A stretch of 64,000 nucleotides of DNA from Obrimoposthia wandeli. Lineage: Eukaryota. A program made the translations under genes and the position numbers. Numbering within the stretch: position 1 is the first letter of the stretch; each line of letters starts with the position of its first letter. The DNA is taken from assembly GCA_977020255.1 (NCBI GenBank), contig CDROCS010002027.1, positions 186,001 through 250,000 on the forward strand, written 5' to 3'. The notes under the pieces were generated by a model. That model was given only the letters and a program-made list of their open reading frames with translations, made no database searches and was not told the origin of the DNA. Positions 36,312 through 44,212 of the stretch are shown piece after piece.

Positions 36312-38000
36312 ATGAATAATATGGGATTCTTTCGAAATTTATCAATTGGCAATAAAATTGGCGGGATAGTGATTATCCTGATTAGCTTGTTATTGATCAG
36401 CTCAGTTTATGGCTTTATTAAGGTCAGTGGTATTGGCAGCGAAATGAAGACCGTGCAAGCAGAAGACATGCCGCTTATCCAATTAATGTCGGACGTTACG
36501 GTTAAGCAACTCGAAAAAGCAATATTGATCGAGAAAGCAATGCGTATTGCCGGAGTTACTGATTCCAATGAGTCTGTCTCTGAAATACACCAGCAGATAA
36601 AGCAATTAGCCGATCAGATCGATCACGAAATAAAGGAAGGCGAAGAGATCCTACTAATCGCCAAGACTCATTCGTTGTCTGATCAACAACTCACTGAACT
36701 GTTGAATTTGGAGAAATTTCTTTTCTCTATAGAAAAAGAGCATATGCAATATGAGAGCAAAGTTGAACATTTAATGGAGTTATTGGAAAGCGGCGAAAAG
36801 GTAGCAAGTTCGCAAGTACACGACGTGGAAACGGCACAGAAAAAGCTTAACCACCACCTTGAAGAAGCGCTAGTCAACGTCGAATCAATGACCGACCACG
36901 CACTGGAAACCGTTCTACATAACGAAGAGTCTGCTCTGCTAAGTATGATCTTAATAAGCCTGCTTTCCAGTATCACAGGTATTGTTTTGGGTGTTCTTAT
37001 CACCCGAGCCATCACTAAGCCCCTTGCACATGCTGTAGAGACAGCGAATAGACTTGCTGAGGGCGATCTTACCGTTGAAGTCAATGTACAATCCAGCGAC
37101 GAGACAGGTCAACTGCTACTTGCTATGCGTAAACTGACAGAAAATTTACGTAAAATAATCACTCAAGTAGCAACTTCAACGGAGCAATTAACTGGCGCAA
37201 CGGTTGAAATGACGGCGGTAACAAAACAGACAGCTGACAATCTGGAAGCTCAAAAAAATGATCTAAGCCAGGCATCTGTGGCCATTAACCAGATGTCTGC
37301 TACGGTACAAGAAGTAGCACAAAGTGCTGCACTTGCTGAAAAATCAGCTCGACGGGCCGATACGCAAGCGAGCCACGGAGGTTCTGTGGTCAATCAAGTC
37401 AGCGATTCTATCAATACCCTGGCAACAGAAATTGAAGACACTCAGGCTGTTATCAACCGGCTCGATAACGAAACCGATAATGTCGACTCTATTCTTGAGG
37501 TGATTACATCCATCGCGGAGCAAACAAATTTGTTAGCTCTGAATGCTGCTATTGAAGCGGCGCGGGCCGGAGAGCAAGGTCGCGGTTTTTCCGTGGTAGC
37601 AGATGAGGTTCGTACACTTGCCAGCCGTACACAAATGTCTATTTCTGAAACCCAGCAGATTACCGGACGTCTGAAAAGCGAGACGAACACTTCCGTTCAG
37701 GCGATGAAAAATGGCCATGAAAAAACGAATTTCACTGTTGAGCTATCGAAACAAGCCGGGCAAGCACTAATGGAAATATCTCAAGCCGTAACCAGCATCA
37801 ATGAGATGAACATACAAATAGCGAGTGCGGCTGAGCAACAAAGCGTAGTGACTGAGCAAACCAATGTTTCTATCAACAGAATTAATCAAGCAGCGATAGA
37901 GAACTCTGCCGGGGCCCAGCAACTAGCTACCGCAACAGAGGAAATCGCTCAGTTATCTGAAAACCTTAAGCAGCTTGTCGGGTATTTTAAGGTCGCATAA
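36312..38000 (+). CDS. Methyl-accepting chemotaxis protein (TM-4HB-TM-HAMP-MA)
   Basis: [37 protein letters not shown]. Confidence 0.95.
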
Positions 38001-38127
38001 AACGCTTAAAGGCCAGAGTAAATACTCATAAATTTACTATGAAAGCCTAAAGCGTTTATCAAATTGTAAAATGTTCGGTGTTGGCCAATTTCAGCCATCG
38101 GATAAAATATTCCAAAAAAGACGGAAA
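37947..38127 (+). repeat. Direct repeat copy 1: MCP 3' end plus ~125 bp of downstream flank
   Basis: Homologous to 44032-44212; the non-coding part has about 8 differences in ~116 nt. Confidence 0.85.
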
Positions 38128-38173
38128 TTGGCACAACGCGGACATACCAACGCCAACCACAGCAGCGTAGTTA

Positions 38174-38332
38174 GTGCTCATCCTGAAACGGGGTCGTCGC
38201 GAGAGCGTTTCAAGCACTCAAGATACGTACTTCTAGATATAGGCGTTTGGTTATTCCAAATAACTAGATCTTGTAGTATGTAGATTGAGTTAGTGAGGCG
38301 TTCGCAGTAGGCATCCGTTTCTGGATGGGCAC
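38174..38332 (-). mobile_element. MITE family A, copy 3 (159 bp, TSD TAGTTA)
   Basis: Reverse orientation relative to copies 1-2; TAGTTA at 38168-38173 and 38333-38338. Confidence 0.9.
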
Positions 38333-38338
38333 TAGTTA

Positions 38339-38497
38339 GTGTTCATCCTGAAACAGGGTCGTCGCGAGAGCGACTCAATGATTCAAGATATGTACTACTA
38401 GATATGGGCGTTTGGTTATTCCAAATAACTAGATCTTGTAGTGAGTAGATTGTGTTAGTGAGGCGTTCGCAGTAGGCATCCGTTTCAGGATGAACAC
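38339..38497 (-). mobile_element. MITE family A, copy 4 (159 bp), in tandem with copy 3
   Basis: Shares TAGTTA 38333-38338 with copy 3; TAGTTA again at 38498-38503. Confidence 0.9.
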
Positions 38498-40272: not shown

Positions 40273-40287
40273 TGTTATAATATAACC
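40273..40287. promoter_or_regulatory. Zur box
   Basis: TGTTATAATATAACC, 14/15 match to the proteobacterial Zur core TGTTATAATATAACA, upstream of zinc-uptake genes. Confidence 0.8.
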
Positions 40288-40329
40288 TTTAGAATATCCT
40301 TTCATAACCATTCATTCAAATTGACACTC

Positions 40330-40623
40330 ATGTATTTAAAAGCCTTTCACACTAAGATGACCAGTTGCATACTTGCTCTACTGCTCTTGTTATCAGTGCA
40401 GGCCAATATATTGCATGGCATTGATCATGACGAACAGCATCACAGCGAACACCACTGTAGTTTGTTCCAAAGCTGCGGGCAGTTGATGAATGTCACTATG
40501 CTCACCATCGCAGTGATTGTGATTACCTTTATTGCTGCCTTAACACCAGCCATTCGACTGCCTCAGTTAACAGCTTTTACAACAAGAGTCCGCGGACCTC
40601 CAGCCATCTATTTTCCTATATAA
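40330..40623 (+). CDS. Small His-rich membrane leader protein with C-terminal RGPP (DUF2607/DUF2946-like)
   Basis: MYLKAF...ILALLLLLSVQANILHGIDHDEQHHSEHHC...hydrophobic segment...RVRGPPAIYFPI*. The ORF-track start at 40213 would run through the Zur box. Confidence 0.7.
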   Translation: MYLKAFHTKMTSCILALLLLLSVQANILHGIDHDEQHHSEHHCSLFQSCGQLMNVTMLTIAVIVITFIAALTPAIRLPQLTAFTTRVRGPPAIYFPI

Positions 40624-40655
40624 ACACTTCTACTCATTACATTAAGATTCAATAA

Positions 40656-40692
40656 AAATAACAGCGCCAATATGACACGCTGTATATTTTTC
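40656..40692 (+). terminator. Hairpin plus short T-run between the leader ORF and zrgA (possible attenuator)
   Basis: AAATA-ACAGCG / CGCTGT-a-TATTT stem, then TTC TT. Confidence 0.4.
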
Positions 40693-40715
40693 TTGGTCTA
40701 TTTTTAAGGAAAATT

Positions 40716-41360
40716 ATGTCTACTCACACACATTTTAAACGCACTGTTATCGGTTCAGTGGGAATATTTACGTCTGCATTTTGTTTAGCGAATTCAGATT
40801 CTAATCAAACTTCAGTCCAACACGATGCACACCAACATGGTCAAATTGTTCTCAACGTTGTACAAGAAGCGCAGAATCTACAAATAGAGTTAGAGGCCCC
40901 AGGTGCCGATGTTGTTGGGTTTGAAACACTTAATGGCGATGAACAGCAAAAACAACTACTCGCTGAGGCAATAAAGACACTCAATCAATCTACAAAACTA
41001 TTTGCCTTAAGCAGTGCTGCTAATTGCCAATTACAAACATCAAGTGTTTCACATAATTTTGAGCAACATATAGATGAAGCTCATGATGAACATGAAGAGC
41101 ATGAAGAACATGAAGAGCATGAAGAGCATGAAGAGCATGAAGAGCATGAAGAGCATGAAGAGCATGAAGAGTATTCTGAACACGGTAGCTTTAGTGCGCA
41201 ATACCTTTTTCAATGCACTAACATTGAAAAACTGAAGAGTATAAAGACTCAATGGTTTAACCTTTTCTCAGCGAGCGAATCCATCAAGGTTCAGCAACTT
41301 ACTGATAAAGGTCAAAGTATCAATCTTTTAGATCGCAACAACCCTGAAATAAAATTTTAA
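40716..41360 (+). CDS. zrgA: Zinc-binding periplasmic protein, DUF2796/ZrgA type
   Basis: HDAHQHG, ELEAPGADVVGFE, His/Glu repeat, YLFQC. Confidence 0.85.
   Translation: MSTHTHFKRTVIGSVGIFTSAFCLANSDSNQTSVQHDAHQHGQIVLNVVQEAQNLQIELEAPGADVVGFETLNGDEQQKQLLAEAIKTLNQSTKLFALSSAANCQLQTSSVSHNFEQHIDEAHDEHEEHEEHEEHEEHEEHEEHEEHEEHEEYSEHGSFSAQYLFQCTNIEKLKSIKTQWFNLFSASESIKVQQLTDKGQSINLLDRNNPEIKF
41082..41171 (+). repeat. In-frame 9-bp tandem repeat (CATGAAGAG)x10 encoding HDE(HEE)9
   Basis: 10 units, 8 of them identical CATGAAGAG. Confidence 0.95.
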
Positions 41361-41415: not shown

Positions 41416-42117
41416 ATGAACATCATTGAATTAAACAACTTAGTGTATCGGTGGCCGGGCAGCAAACAGAGCTGCTTAGAGCTAGAACACTTTTCACTTA
41501 AGCAAGGTGAGAAGCTATTTATTAGCGGCGCTAGCGGTAGCGGAAAATCTACTCTACTCGGTTTGCTAGCAGGTATTCTAACACCTAGTGAAGGCCGTTT
41601 GAACATATTACAAACAGAATTAAGCGAGTTGAAAAGCGTCGCCAGGGATAAATTCAGAGCGGATCACATCGGTTATATTTTCCAGCAGTTCAATCTAATC
41701 CCCTATCTTAGCGTAATCGAAAATGTACTCTTGCCCTGTCATTTTTCTAAGCAGCGACACAGACAAATAAAGCAGGATCCACAAGCACAAGCAAGTGATT
41801 TGTTATTGCAATTGCGCTTACCTAAAGACTGTTTAGATAAACCTGTCACACAGCTTAGTATCGGACAGCAACAACGAGTCGCAGCTGCCCGCGCACTGAT
41901 TGGCAACCCTGAATTAGTCATAGCGGATGAACCAACATCTGCCCTTGATAGCCAAAGCCGCAATGCCTTTATCGAACTATTGATGGAACAGTGTGACCGC
42001 ACGGGAGCCAGCTTATTGTTTGTCTCCCATGATCAGCAGCTACAAAGCCATTTTGATCGCCACCTAGCACTATCAACCCTTAATAACGTTGCGCAGAACC
42101 CTGATGAATATATATAA
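41416..42117 (+). CDS. ABC ATP-binding protein (Zrg cluster)
   Basis: GASGSGKST, LSIGQQQRVAAARAL, DEPTSALD. Confidence 0.93.
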   Translation: MNIIELNNLVYRWPGSKQSCLELEHFSLKQGEKLFISGASGSGKSTLLGLLAGILTPSEGRLNILQTELSELKSVARDKFRADHIGYIFQQFNLIPYLSVIENVLLPCHFSKQRHRQIKQDPQAQASDLLLQLRLPKDCLDKPVTQLSIGQQQRVAAARALIGNPELVIADEPTSALDSQSRNAFIELLMEQCDRTGASLLFVSHDQQLQSHFDRHLALSTLNNVAQNPDEYI

Positions 42118-43345
42118 ACTCAGTTATAAAAGCGTCATGAACCGTCGCACAACTGCAATGCTAACCGTATTCACCGTCGCTATTTCAGTGCTTTTACTAT
42201 TAGCTGTTGAGCGGGTCCGTGTGCAGGCAAAGCAGAGTTTTGCCAATACCATTTCCAATACTGACCTTATCGTAGGCGCACGCTCAGGACAAATTAACCT
42301 GTTACTTTACTCGGTGTTTCGTATTGGTAATCCAACCAATAATATAGACTGGAAAAGTTATCAGCAGGTACTAAAAGACCCGTCAGTTCGCTGGTCAATT
42401 CCTATATCACTCGGTGATTCACACCGCGGTTTTCGTGTAATAGGTACTAATCAAGACTTTTTTAAACACTATCAATACGGTCGCAAACAGCCTTTGGTGT
42501 TTAACAAAGGAAAGGCGTTTGAAGGCCTTTATGAAACAGTGATCGGTGCGCAAGTTGCTAAAGAACTAGGCTATACAATCGGCAGTGAAATAATTATTGC
42601 CCATGGCATCAGCGACAAAAAATTTAATCGTCACAAAAACTCGCCTTTTATTGTCACTGGAATATTAGCGCCAACTGGGACTCCTGTTGACAAAAGTGTA
42701 CATGTTTCACTTTTTGCGATTGAAGCTATCCATGCCGGTGGTAACCACAGCGCCAATACGGACAATAAAACGCTACACAAGCAGTTTCAGCCCAAGCAAA
42801 TTACCGCTTTCATGCTGGGGCTAAACTCCAGAGTACAGAGCTTTTCATTGCAGAGAAAAATAAACACTTATCGAAACGAGCCTCTTAGTGCCATTATGCC
42901 AGGTATCGCCTTACACGAACTGTGGGGGATTATGTCGATCGCAGAAAAGGCACTACAAGGCGTTTCCATCTTTGTACTGATTGCTGCAATGTTAGCAATG
43001 CTCGGTAACTTATTGAGTAGTTTACAAGAAAGGCGCCGTGAAATGGCCATATTAAGGGCGATGGGTGCACGACCACAACACGTCTTTGCCCTATTGGTAA
43101 GTGAAGCAAGCTTACTGACCAGCTTAGGTATTGTTTTAGGTGTTAATCTACTATACCTACTTATTGGCGCAATGGGCCCGCTACTGACTGCGCAATACGG
43201 ACTTAGCCTTGAAATGAGCCTATTGAGCCAAACAGAATGGCTACTGATTGCTTTAGTTCAAATATCGGGGATTATTATTGGCTTCATTCCCGCCATTAAC
43301 GCCTATCGCAACTCACTTGTTGATGGCATGACTATTAGAATATAG
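42104..43345 (+). CDS. MacB/FtsX-type ABC permease (Zrg cluster); ATG at 42104
   Basis: DLIVGARSG, ISLGDSHRG, ERRREMAILRAMGA. Confidence 0.9.
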   Translation: MNIYKLSYKSVMNRRTTAMLTVFTVAISVLLLLAVERVRVQAKQSFANTISNTDLIVGARSGQINLLLYSVFRIGNPTNNIDWKSYQQVLKDPSVRWSIPISLGDSHRGFRVIGTNQDFFKHYQYGRKQPLVFNKGKAFEGLYETVIGAQVAKELGYTIGSEIIIAHGISDKKFNRHKNSPFIVTGILAPTGTPVDKSVHVSLFAIEAIHAGGNHSANTDNKTLHKQFQPKQITAFMLGLNSRVQSFSLQRKINTYRNEPLSAIMPGIALHELWGIMSIAEKALQGVSIFVLIAAMLAMLGNLLSSLQERRREMAILRAMGARPQHVFALLVSEASLLTSLGIVLGVNLLYLLIGAMGPLLTAQYGLSLEMSLLSQTEWLLIALVQISGIIIGFIPAINAYRNSLVDGMTIRI

Positions 43346-43352
43346 GACTTAT

Positions 43353-43841
43353 ATGAAAAAAATAATCACACTGGCACTTAGCCTATTAATTTGCTTACCT
43401 CTTTACGCTCAAGAAACAGAACTGAACTGGGAAGATCTAATACCCGTCAATGAAAAAAATATTATGCAGGCCTGGATGGCCAAACAGAGTAGCATACAGG
43501 CTGACCAATTCAGCGAAGAAGAACCGCCACAACAAGGTACTGTACGTACCGATCTGAATGGGCAAGTCATAAAAATAGCGGGGTTTATCATCCCTTTAGA
43601 AGGAGATGAAGAACTAATCACTGAACTGTTACTTGTCCCTTACTTCGGTGCTTGTTTTCACGTGCCACCTCCCCCTGAAAATCAAATAATTTACGTAAAA
43701 TTTGCTGATGGCGTGCCCTTAAAAAAACTTTGGGACGTGGTTTACGTAGTTGGTAAATTACACGCTGAAAACATTTCTCTTGATATAGCGCAGGTGGGCT
43801 ACAGTATGGAAGGGATTAGAACAGAGCAATACAGCGAGTAA
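43353..43841 (+). CDS. DUF3299 family protein (Zrg cluster)
   Basis: ELNWEDLIP, LLVPYFGACFHVPPPPENQII. Confidence 0.9.
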   Translation: MKKIITLALSLLICLPLYAQETELNWEDLIPVNEKNIMQAWMAKQSSIQADQFSEEEPPQQGTVRTDLNGQVIKIAGFIIPLEGDEELITELLLVPYFGACFHVPPPPENQIIYVKFADGVPLKKLWDVVYVVGKLHAENISLDIAQVGYSMEGIRTEQYSE

Positions 43842-44031: not shown

Positions 44032-44212
44032 GCTGATTTACTGATACCTTAAACAGCTTTTCGGACATTTTAAAATCGCTTAAAACACTTAAAATCCAGA
44101 GTAAATACTCATAAATCTACTATGCTAAGCCTAAAACGTTTATCTAATTGTAAGAATGTTCGGTATTGGCCAATTTCAGCCATCGGTTAAAATATTCCAA
44201 AAAAGACGGAAA
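44032..44212 (+). pseudogene. Decayed copy of the MCP 3' end (…LKQLFGHFKIA*) plus conserved flank; direct repeat copy 2
   Basis: cttaaacagcttttcggacattttaaaatcgcttaa vs cttaagcagcttgtcgggtattttaaggtcgcataa at the real MCP end; 1-nt deletions upstream. Confidence 0.75.

Follow-up and report, generated by a model that had tools for sequence, protein, structure and literature searches.

The 64,000-nucleotide stretch of DNA analysed here (positions 186,001 to 250,000 of contig CDROCS010002027.1, Obrimoposthia wandeli assembly GCA_977020255.1; hereafter, the window) carries a zinc-uptake operon headed by a small open reading frame (ORF), which lies directly upstream of zrgA, the gene for a periplasmic zinc-binding protein. 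This ORF, at 40330-40623, is the local version of ZrgD, and it is our belief that it is probably a cis-acting regulatory leader and not a subunit of the transporter. Namely, a ribosome arrested near the end of the leader would unmask the ribosome-binding site (RBS) of zrgA, and it would do so in response to zinc, as a layer beneath control by Zur. We consider this the reading to be favoured, albeit with some reserve. The features from which it starts are observed directly: the anatomy of the ORF, the pattern of its conservation, a spacer of fixed length, a co-varying RNA helix and the link with zrgA.

Read from its N-terminus, the leader protein consists of a hydrophobic segment ending in VQA, the histidine- and cysteine-rich cluster HGIDHDEQHHSEHHC, a second hydrophobic stretch and the tetrapeptide R88-G-P-P91, after which only six residues (AIYFPI) precede a TAA stop codon. 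A preliminary description of the window had reported a 97-residue ORF composed of precisely these parts, and we find all of them where it placed them. The start codon at 40330 is supported by the relatives, in which codon 10, an in-frame ATG in the window, reads ATA. The N-terminus has a basic n-region and a hydrophobic core of 11-12 residues ahead of the VQA, and residues 1-25 are thus a candidate Sec signal peptide or membrane anchor. In an AlphaFold2 (AF2) model built on an alignment of 90 sequences, only residues 2-30 form a confident helix, and residues 53-97 are low-confidence coil. The second hydrophobic segment, which the preliminary description had listed among the parts, is indeed present in the window ORF, but it is confined to the clade to which the window belongs.

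The conservation pattern was obtained by building an alignment of ZrgA and then fetching 80 zrgA loci of different species, covering Vibrio, Photobacterium, Aliivibrio, Enterovibrio, Grimontia, Osedax symbionts and metagenome-assembled genomes (MAGs) of Nitrincolaceae. In 75 of the 80, zrgA is adjoined on its upstream side by an ORF of 90-120 codons with an R-x-P-P motif whose Arg comes exactly 45 positions after a Cys; the recurrence of R-x-P-P at a fixed distance from a Cys, in so many independent zrgA loci, is not chance. The gene order of the operon is likewise the same in 75 of these 80 loci of other species. In a 76th locus, that of Vibrio metoecus OP3H (L005:2600-2940), a frameshift divides zrgD between two frames, which points either to a pseudogene or to an assembly error, and one Sulfitobacter MAG has a different context. 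The same association emerges from the side of the small protein: an exhaustive profile search with it gave 15 representatives, and in a reverse look-up 5 of 5 ZrgD-like proteins adjoin a PF10986 ZrgA gene, upstream of that gene. A word-indexed protein search returned only 4 close metagenomic relatives for the 97-residue query and only 9 for the 90-sequence alignment. The ZrgA of the window is itself at most 50% identical to every homologue fetched, the nearest being that of a Nitrincolaceae MAG.

In the 90-sequence alignment, which goes down to 12-25% identity with the window protein, no columns are invariant except H29, C43, R88, P90 and P91, with H38 kept in at least 90% of the sequences. 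The preliminary description had proposed to check two properties of homologues encoded upstream of DUF2796 (ZrgA) genes, namely conservation of R-x-P-P and of its distance to the stop codon, and these have parted ways: the motif is invariant, and the distance to the stop is unconserved, ranging from 1 to 20 residues. In other words, the conserved quantity is the distance to the Cys and not that to the stop. The motif occurs as ARSPP, ARAPP, SRAPP, ARDPP, ARGPP, PRSPP and VRGPP, and all four of its codons vary synonymously (CGC, CGT, CGA, AGA or AGG for Arg, and all four codons for Pro), so that it is the peptide on which selection acts. The R-G-P-P of the window, close to the C-terminus of an upstream ORF (uORF), fits the arrest motif class (R/Q/H)-(A/G/D)-(P/G/S)-(P/G), and uORF motifs of the form R-(A/G/D)-P-P, including R-G-P-P, stall ribosomes with the codon of the third residue in the P site (bioRxiv 10.1101/2023.09.02.556018).

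Between C43 and R88 lie 44 residues, and this spacing is kept in 92 of 93 sequences, the remaining one having 45. The spacer is free of indels, and its mean pairwise identity is just 11%, as against 39% for the metal-cluster region. Fixed length combined with free sequence points to a molecular ruler, and this pattern of conservation also characterises the copper leaders CruR and CutF (DUF2946); judging by the alignment, we take the spacer of the window ORF to be such a ruler.

As to its identity, the leader is a divergent homologue of ZrgD (DUF2607). The preliminary description had noted that a small gene also precedes zrgA in Vibrio; that gene is present, and it already has a name, since in V. 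parahaemolyticus it is zrgD, a DUF2607 gene heading the zrg operon, whose gene order is the same as that found here (PMC9817125). In the window, too, the ORF is the first cistron, adjoining zrgA, of an operon with a Zur box and with genes for an ATP-binding cassette (ABC) ATPase, a permease and a DUF3299 protein. It has the motifs shared by ZrgD proteins, i.e. a hydrophobic N-terminus, H..D..HHxxHHC, the 44-residue spacer and R-x-P-P. The Pfam matches themselves are weak: the window protein scores 18.4 bits against DUF2607 (PF10795; cutoff 24, E 0.0027), with only residues 16-50 aligned, and 16.1 bits against DUF2946 (PF11162; cutoff 23.7, E 0.019), with residues 29-91 aligned to positions 51-117 of the 117-position model, the alignment ending at the RAPP motif. 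For comparison, V. cholerae ZrgD matches PF10795 with an E value of 2.8e-53. Taken together with the published descriptions of zrgD, these matches indicate that the operon of the window is of the zrgD-A-C-B-E type and that its ZrgD is very divergent.

At E <0.01, DUF2607 is matched by 75 of the 90 sequences in the alignment, and DUF2946 by 7. In particular, some leaders have CxxC in place of HHC, as in Photobacterium (CSIC), Enterovibrio (CVLC) and Grimontia (CMLC), and of nine such versions scanned, most had DUF2946 as the best or the sole Pfam match; these matches are below threshold, at 12-21 bits, and reach the end of the model in all but one. The CxxC-type matches to DUF2946 and the matches to DUF2607 therefore suggest that the ORFs upstream of zrgA bridge the two families, on the basis of sub-threshold Pfam matches. 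With DUF2946 proteins the window protein shares the C-terminal proline motif of RAPP type (RGPP at 88-91), and where these have CxxC or CxxxC it has HHSEHHC-x5-C instead.

A further element, which was absent from the preliminary description, is an RNA helix in which the last codons of the leader, acting as an anti-Shine-Dalgarno (anti-SD) arm, pair with the Shine-Dalgarno (SD) sequence and start codon of zrgA. The helix is found again elsewhere in the family, where both of its arms differ in sequence, for example AAUUUUGC/GCAAAAUU in one Vibrio group, CUCCAGAGUAAU/UUUAUUUUGGGG in a second and UAUCCUGAG/UUCAGGAUA in a third. When the 27 nucleotides (nt) starting at the first Pro codon were paired with the cognate or with a non-cognate SD window, the mean duplex energy was -9.4 kcal/mol for cognate and -6.2 kcal/mol for non-cognate pairs, and the cognate mean was reached in 0 of 20,000 permutations (z = -10.9 on 50 loci made non-redundant with a 70% filter). 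In 51 of 76 loci, the zone at the two prolines pairs more strongly than all 7 zones of the same size further upstream in the uORF. With the Pro codons left out the values become -7.5 and -4.9 kcal/mol (z -9.7), and the tail zone is then the best of 9 in 33 of 76 loci, where 8.4 are expected. What is more, in six loci whose stop codon lies 11-20 codons past the prolines the anti-SD arm stays at the prolines; its position follows these, and not the stop codon. From the first Pro codon to the start of zrgA there are at least 53 nt (median 70), and a ribosome stalled at the prolines would therefore leave the RBS clear. In three independent distant loci the outcome was mixed: one has a clear helix, one has a helix that does not outdo its control zones, and in the remaining one it is weak.

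We infer from this an arrest, the binding of zinc, the compartment in which zinc would be sensed and the sign of the response, along the following lines. When zinc is scarce, Zur would leave its box at 40273-40287 and the operon would be transcribed. On reaching R88-G-P90-P91, a ribosome translating the leader would have residues 29-43, the cluster, 47-61 residues behind its peptidyl-transferase centre. The exit tunnel has room for roughly 30-40 residues, and the His/Asp/Cys cluster would then be located just beyond it. R-x-P-P would slow or arrest the ribosome while its P site is occupied by the first Pro codon, and the paused ribosome, keeping the anti-SD stretch 40604-40618 in its mRNA channel, would free the SD and start codon of zrgA at 40706-40718 for translation. 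Zinc binding to the emerged cluster, be it in the cytoplasm, the translocon or the periplasm, would alter the dwell time of the ribosome. By analogy with CruR, the direction we favour is that zinc ends the arrest and zrgA is masked again, because the target is an importer, as it is with CruR and BfrG. The result would be a post-transcriptional shut-off of zinc uptake, faster than repression by Zur combined with mRNA decay. Unmasking of this kind would follow the logic of CutF/cutO and SecM/secA (PMC9973294; bioRxiv 10.1101/2025.02.05.636593). The preliminary description had proposed a zinc-sensing leader on top of Zur repression, and of this the invariance of R-x-P-P and the fixed, CruR-like spacing speak in its favour, and the lack of a conserved distance from RGPP to the stop does not. 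In its wider form, the idea is that ZrgD/DUF2607 may be the first natural zinc-responsive arrest peptide, whose cluster, set 44 residues from R-x-P-P, would fold on Zn(II) as it leaves the tunnel and so alter the dwell of the ribosome on the anti-SD arm; we advance this wider form tentatively, as a possibility to be taken seriously.

The closest published parallel is CruR (Bp2923) of Bordetella pertussis, a DUF2946 protein. Both are small uORFs, apparently of exported type, heading a metal-uptake operon, with a metal-ligand motif at a fixed distance from a C-terminal motif of R-A-P-P type, and the leader would, as CruR does, add a layer over a transcriptional metal regulator. In CruR, the distance from CxxC to RAPP is 45 residues, it stays within 1-2 residues of this in more than 2000 DUF2946 proteins, and altered spacing disturbs regulation (PMC9426467); the 44 residues found in the window family are conserved to that degree. 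Sub-threshold PF11162 matches that extend to the RAPP end are also given by the window ORF and by its relatives in Photobacterium and Enterovibrio, scores among relatives being 16-21 bits. That said, CruR responds to copper through CxxC, whereas here a His-rich HHxxHHC precedes zinc genes, and the 44-residue spacer, measured from the single conserved Cys, falls short of that of CruR by 4 residues if the first Cys of CxxC is taken as the reference and by 1 if the second is. Moreover, CruR acts through Rho-dependent termination in a 162-nt spacer, while the conserved RNA feature here is the SD-masking helix.

In that last respect the leader is closer to CutF of Rhodobacter capsulatus (PMC9973294; bioRxiv 10.1101/2025.02.05.636593), in which, as would be the case here, a metal motif is combined with a proline arrest site at the C-terminus. 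CutF is a leader with a Sec signal, acts only in cis, and its stalled ribosome melts a stem that hides the SD sequence of the next gene. It needs its signal peptide, whereas CruR works without its own. Unlike the leader studied here, CutF has CxxxC and PPP as its motifs and responds to copper; it is the metal that stalls it, and the gene under its control encodes a detoxifying oxidase. Since the genes controlled here serve uptake, the opposite sign is more likely. The authors of the CutF studies predicted relatives for other metals, naming nickel and cobalt (PMC9973294; bioRxiv 10.1101/2025.02.05.636593). With the Vibrio ZrgD proteins (V. cholerae and V. parahaemolyticus) the window protein has in common the first position in a Zur-regulated zrgD-A-C-B-E operon, size, motifs and spacer; it is only 19-25% identical to them, has RGPP where they have RSPP, and has a hydrophobic spacer specific to its clade. 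The N-termini of Vibrio ZrgD proteins are more similar to a transmembrane (TM) anchor (PMC9820375), and that of the window protein is shorter and signal-like. Finally, SecM, ApdA, ApdP and the RQH family resemble the leader in having R-(A/G/D)-P-P near the C-terminus of a small uORF and an N-terminal export signal, which in the leader is a candidate one (bioRxiv 10.1101/2023.09.02.556018), and in that the sequence upstream of the motif is lineage-specific. These peptides differ in that they monitor Sec or YidC, precede secA, secDF or yidC, and have neither a metal cluster nor a fixed ruler to one.

Several points weigh against the view that the leader is an arrest-based zinc sensor. The window protein is below the Pfam gathering threshold for DUF2607 and for DUF2946 alike, there is no obvious SD sequence ahead of the leader ORF, and the commonest form of the motif in the family, R-S-P-P, is outside the motif set tested in bioRxiv 10.1101/2023.09.02.556018. 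Three Vibrionaceae species, Photobacterium rosenbergii (L021), Vibrio albus (L026) and Vibrio hannami (L039), have zrgA without zrgD, and in the latter two zrgA directly follows a Zur-like box; as natural operons without the leader, these three are useful comparators. As for the helix, the permutation tests ignore shared ancestry except for the redundancy filter given above, and single spacers, when folded, give only weak z-scores (-2.0 in the window, -1.4 to +0.3 in its close relatives). RNAalifold recovers the anti-SD/SD helix from the window and its four close relatives with an unfavourable covariation term; the helix is invariant in this clade, and covariation is consequently missing there. 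In the window, the anti-SD arm spans from 7 nt to +21 past the first Pro codon, and a ribosome stalled at the prolines would cover it only in part. In the model, the SD sequence of the window has a probability of being unpaired of 0.02 in free mRNA, which rises to 0.22-0.41 when a ribosome sits on the prolines and to 0.53 when the ribosome is a terminating one; since the latter opens the helix better, plain translational coupling would explain the helix with no arrest at all.

This last point leads directly to an explanation that we regard as unlikely but worth stating in full, namely that ZrgD assists the Zrg transporter as an ordinary small zinc-binding protein, anchored in the membrane or located in the periplasm, for instance as a metallochaperone or an assembly factor. 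R-x-P-P would then be a structural or interaction motif, and the helix would couple translation of zrgA to that of zrgD and thereby set the ratio of their products. Coupling helices are common in operons, and the His/Cys cluster could well bind zinc in a mature protein. In the literature, V. cholerae ZrgD is a hypothetical protein of 101 residues with one TM helix, and a zrgABCDE knockout grows slightly worse than a zrgABC knockout (PMC9820375). However, a stretch that is always 44 residues long, yet is only 11% identical and lacks a predicted fold, is unlike a folded or interacting domain, conservation is restricted to the metal cluster and R-x-P-P, and in the versions with long tails the anti-SD arm tracks the prolines and not the stop codon. 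The gene is missing in some species, and the single zrgD knockout of V. cholerae grows normally (PMC9820375), which is expected of a regulator whose loss unmasks the transporter and does not disable it. In other words, an accessory protein with plain coupling explains the helix and the ligands, but neither the conservation of the spacer in length only nor the invariance of R-x-P-P.

Two further alternatives keep the arrest or the leader and change what it responds to or how it acts. The arrest might report a signal other than zinc, such as export through Sec/SRP as in SecM, or might be constitutive, boosting translation of zrgA or protecting its mRNA, the His/Cys cluster then serving the released peptide. 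Arrest peptides of RAPP type are mostly export monitors (bioRxiv 10.1101/2023.09.02.556018) and the leader does have a candidate N-terminal export or anchor signal; however, the genes downstream are for zinc uptake and not for Sec or YidC, a His/Asp/Cys cluster at an invariant distance corresponds to the feature that confers the metal response in CruR (PMC9426467), and the switch from CxxC to His-rich ligands parallels that from copper to zinc genes, in keeping with metal selectivity. We consider this alternative rather improbable. More improbable still is transcriptional attenuation of the kind found in CruR, which acts via Rho-dependent termination (PMC9426467): here the arrest would block Rho, or the hairpin at 40654-40691 would terminate transcription unless a ribosome stalled in the leader. 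The window does have a hairpin with an A-tract, a stem and a U-tract between the leader and zrgA, and the spacers are G-poor. Such terminator-like hairpins, on the other hand, are present in just 3 of 76 spacers, so that any role would be a local one, many spacers are only 12-50 nt long, and the hairpin of the window, at about 60 nt from the stall site, is too distant to be melted directly. In V. parahaemolyticus under zinc limitation, moreover, zrgD and zrgA mRNA rise alike, by 147-fold and 205-fold, respectively (PMC9817125).

Among the publications covered, the relevant ones that name zrgD call ZrgD hypothetical and nowhere mention arrest, and a literature search that joined arrest peptides and upstream ORFs with zinc and Zur gave no pertinent result. 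The text of the CutF papers is silent on zinc, ZrgA and DUF2607, and so are those supplements of CruR and CutF that were covered, which also lack DUF2796, the full neighbour table of PMC9973294 being excepted. If a zinc-responsive leader is indeed what ZrgD is, a hypothetical protein of the Vibrio Zrg operon would gain a function, that of a cis-acting sensor and not of a subunit. Metal-sensing nascent-chain leaders, shown for copper only (CruR and CutF), would extend to zinc and to a Zur-controlled importer, and DUF2607 and DUF2946, two Pfam families without known function, would become joined, the ligand set shifting with the metal from CxxC to a His-rich one and the ruler and arrest motif being constant. 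The Zrg importer of Vibrio and its relatives would have a fast translational zinc switch beneath Zur, and Zur boxes alone would be insufficient for inferring zrgA expression. Zinc-finger/SecM force sensors exist as engineered constructs, and ZrgD would be their natural counterpart. Finally, clear mutational predictions follow from the five residues that are invariant, the single spacer length and the RNA helix.

The predicted Zur box is palindromic and overlaps the promoter of the operon. The preliminary description had called it near-perfect, and this holds, TGTTATAATATAACC agreeing with the consensus TGTTATAWTATAACA at 14 of 15 positions. It is the sole match with at most 2 mismatches in the 64-kb window, where 0.48 would be expected by chance; given this expectation, it is position and conservation that carry the weight of the call. 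The box is kept in the four closest relatives, the exact 13-nt core is found at the same relative position in 28 of the fetched loci, and the zrg operon of V. parahaemolyticus has a similar Zur site upstream (PMC9817125). The features of the locus are collected in Table 1.

Table 1. Features of the zrgD-A-C-B-E locus, in window coordinates.
Feature	Position	Strand	Remarks
Palindromic Zur box (predicted)	40273-40287	.	TGTTATAATATAACC; overlaps TATAAT, a -10-like hexamer, at 40276-40281
zrgD-like leader ORF, first cistron	40330-40623	+	97 residues; weak Pfam matches; aligns with 89 ZrgD-like ORFs
N-terminal basic and hydrophobic segment, residues 1-25	40330-40404	+	Ends in VQA; read from sequence
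His/Asp/Cys cluster, H29-x4-D34...H37 H38 x2 H41 H42 C43 x5 C49	40414-40476	+	Candidate Zn(II) site
44-residue spacer, residues 44-87	40459-40590	+	Length fixed, sequence free
R88-G-P-P91, candidate arrest motif	40591-40602	+	Expected P site: P90 codon, 40597-40599; A site: P91 codon
Anti-SD arm, last leader codons	40604-40618	+	Pairs with 40706-40718 at -8.5 kcal/mol
Spacer from leader ORF to zrgA			92 nt
Terminator-like hairpin	40654-40691	+	A-tract, stem 40661-40666/40678-40683, U-tract
zrgA SD sequence and start codon, 3' arm of masking helix	40706-40718	+	SD: AAGGAAAA
zrgA, periplasmic zinc-binding protein	40716-41360	+	PF10986 E 2.1e-45; NF047873 E 2.9e-58
ABC transporter ATPase (zrgC in V. 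parahaemolyticus naming, PMC9817125)	41416-42117	+	PF00005 E 3.9e-31
FtsX/MacB-type permease (zrgB)	42089-43345	+	PF02687, PF12704
DUF3299 protein (zrgE)	43353-43841	+	PF11736 E 7.9e-41

The intergenic hairpin, which is enclosed by the masking helix of the window, is terminator-like when read on either strand. Given the rarity of comparable hairpins, it is lineage-specific, and a conserved intrinsic terminator between the leader and zrgA, which we had also considered, was rejected on the same count of spacers. Two Vibrio species (L033 and L070) have two successive hairpins in their zrgD-zrgA spacers of about 105 nt, and the differences between the hairpins of the two are apparently compensatory.

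The His/Glu-rich loop of the window ZrgA is encoded by a tandem array of a 9-nt unit at 41074-41171 (10.9 copies, 92% matches), whose length is likely variable by slippage. On a larger scale, two direct repeats, 37963-38127 and 44046-44212, are 86-97% identical and lie about 6.08 kb apart, and enclose a GFA-like gene, a TetR gene and the entire zrgD-A-C-B-E operon, an arrangement suggestive of insertion or rearrangement of this block as a single unit. The left repeat takes in the 3' end of a chemoreceptor gene (36312-38000), and adjoining it, at 38168-38497, a 165-nt unit is present twice in tandem, the two copies being 90% identical.

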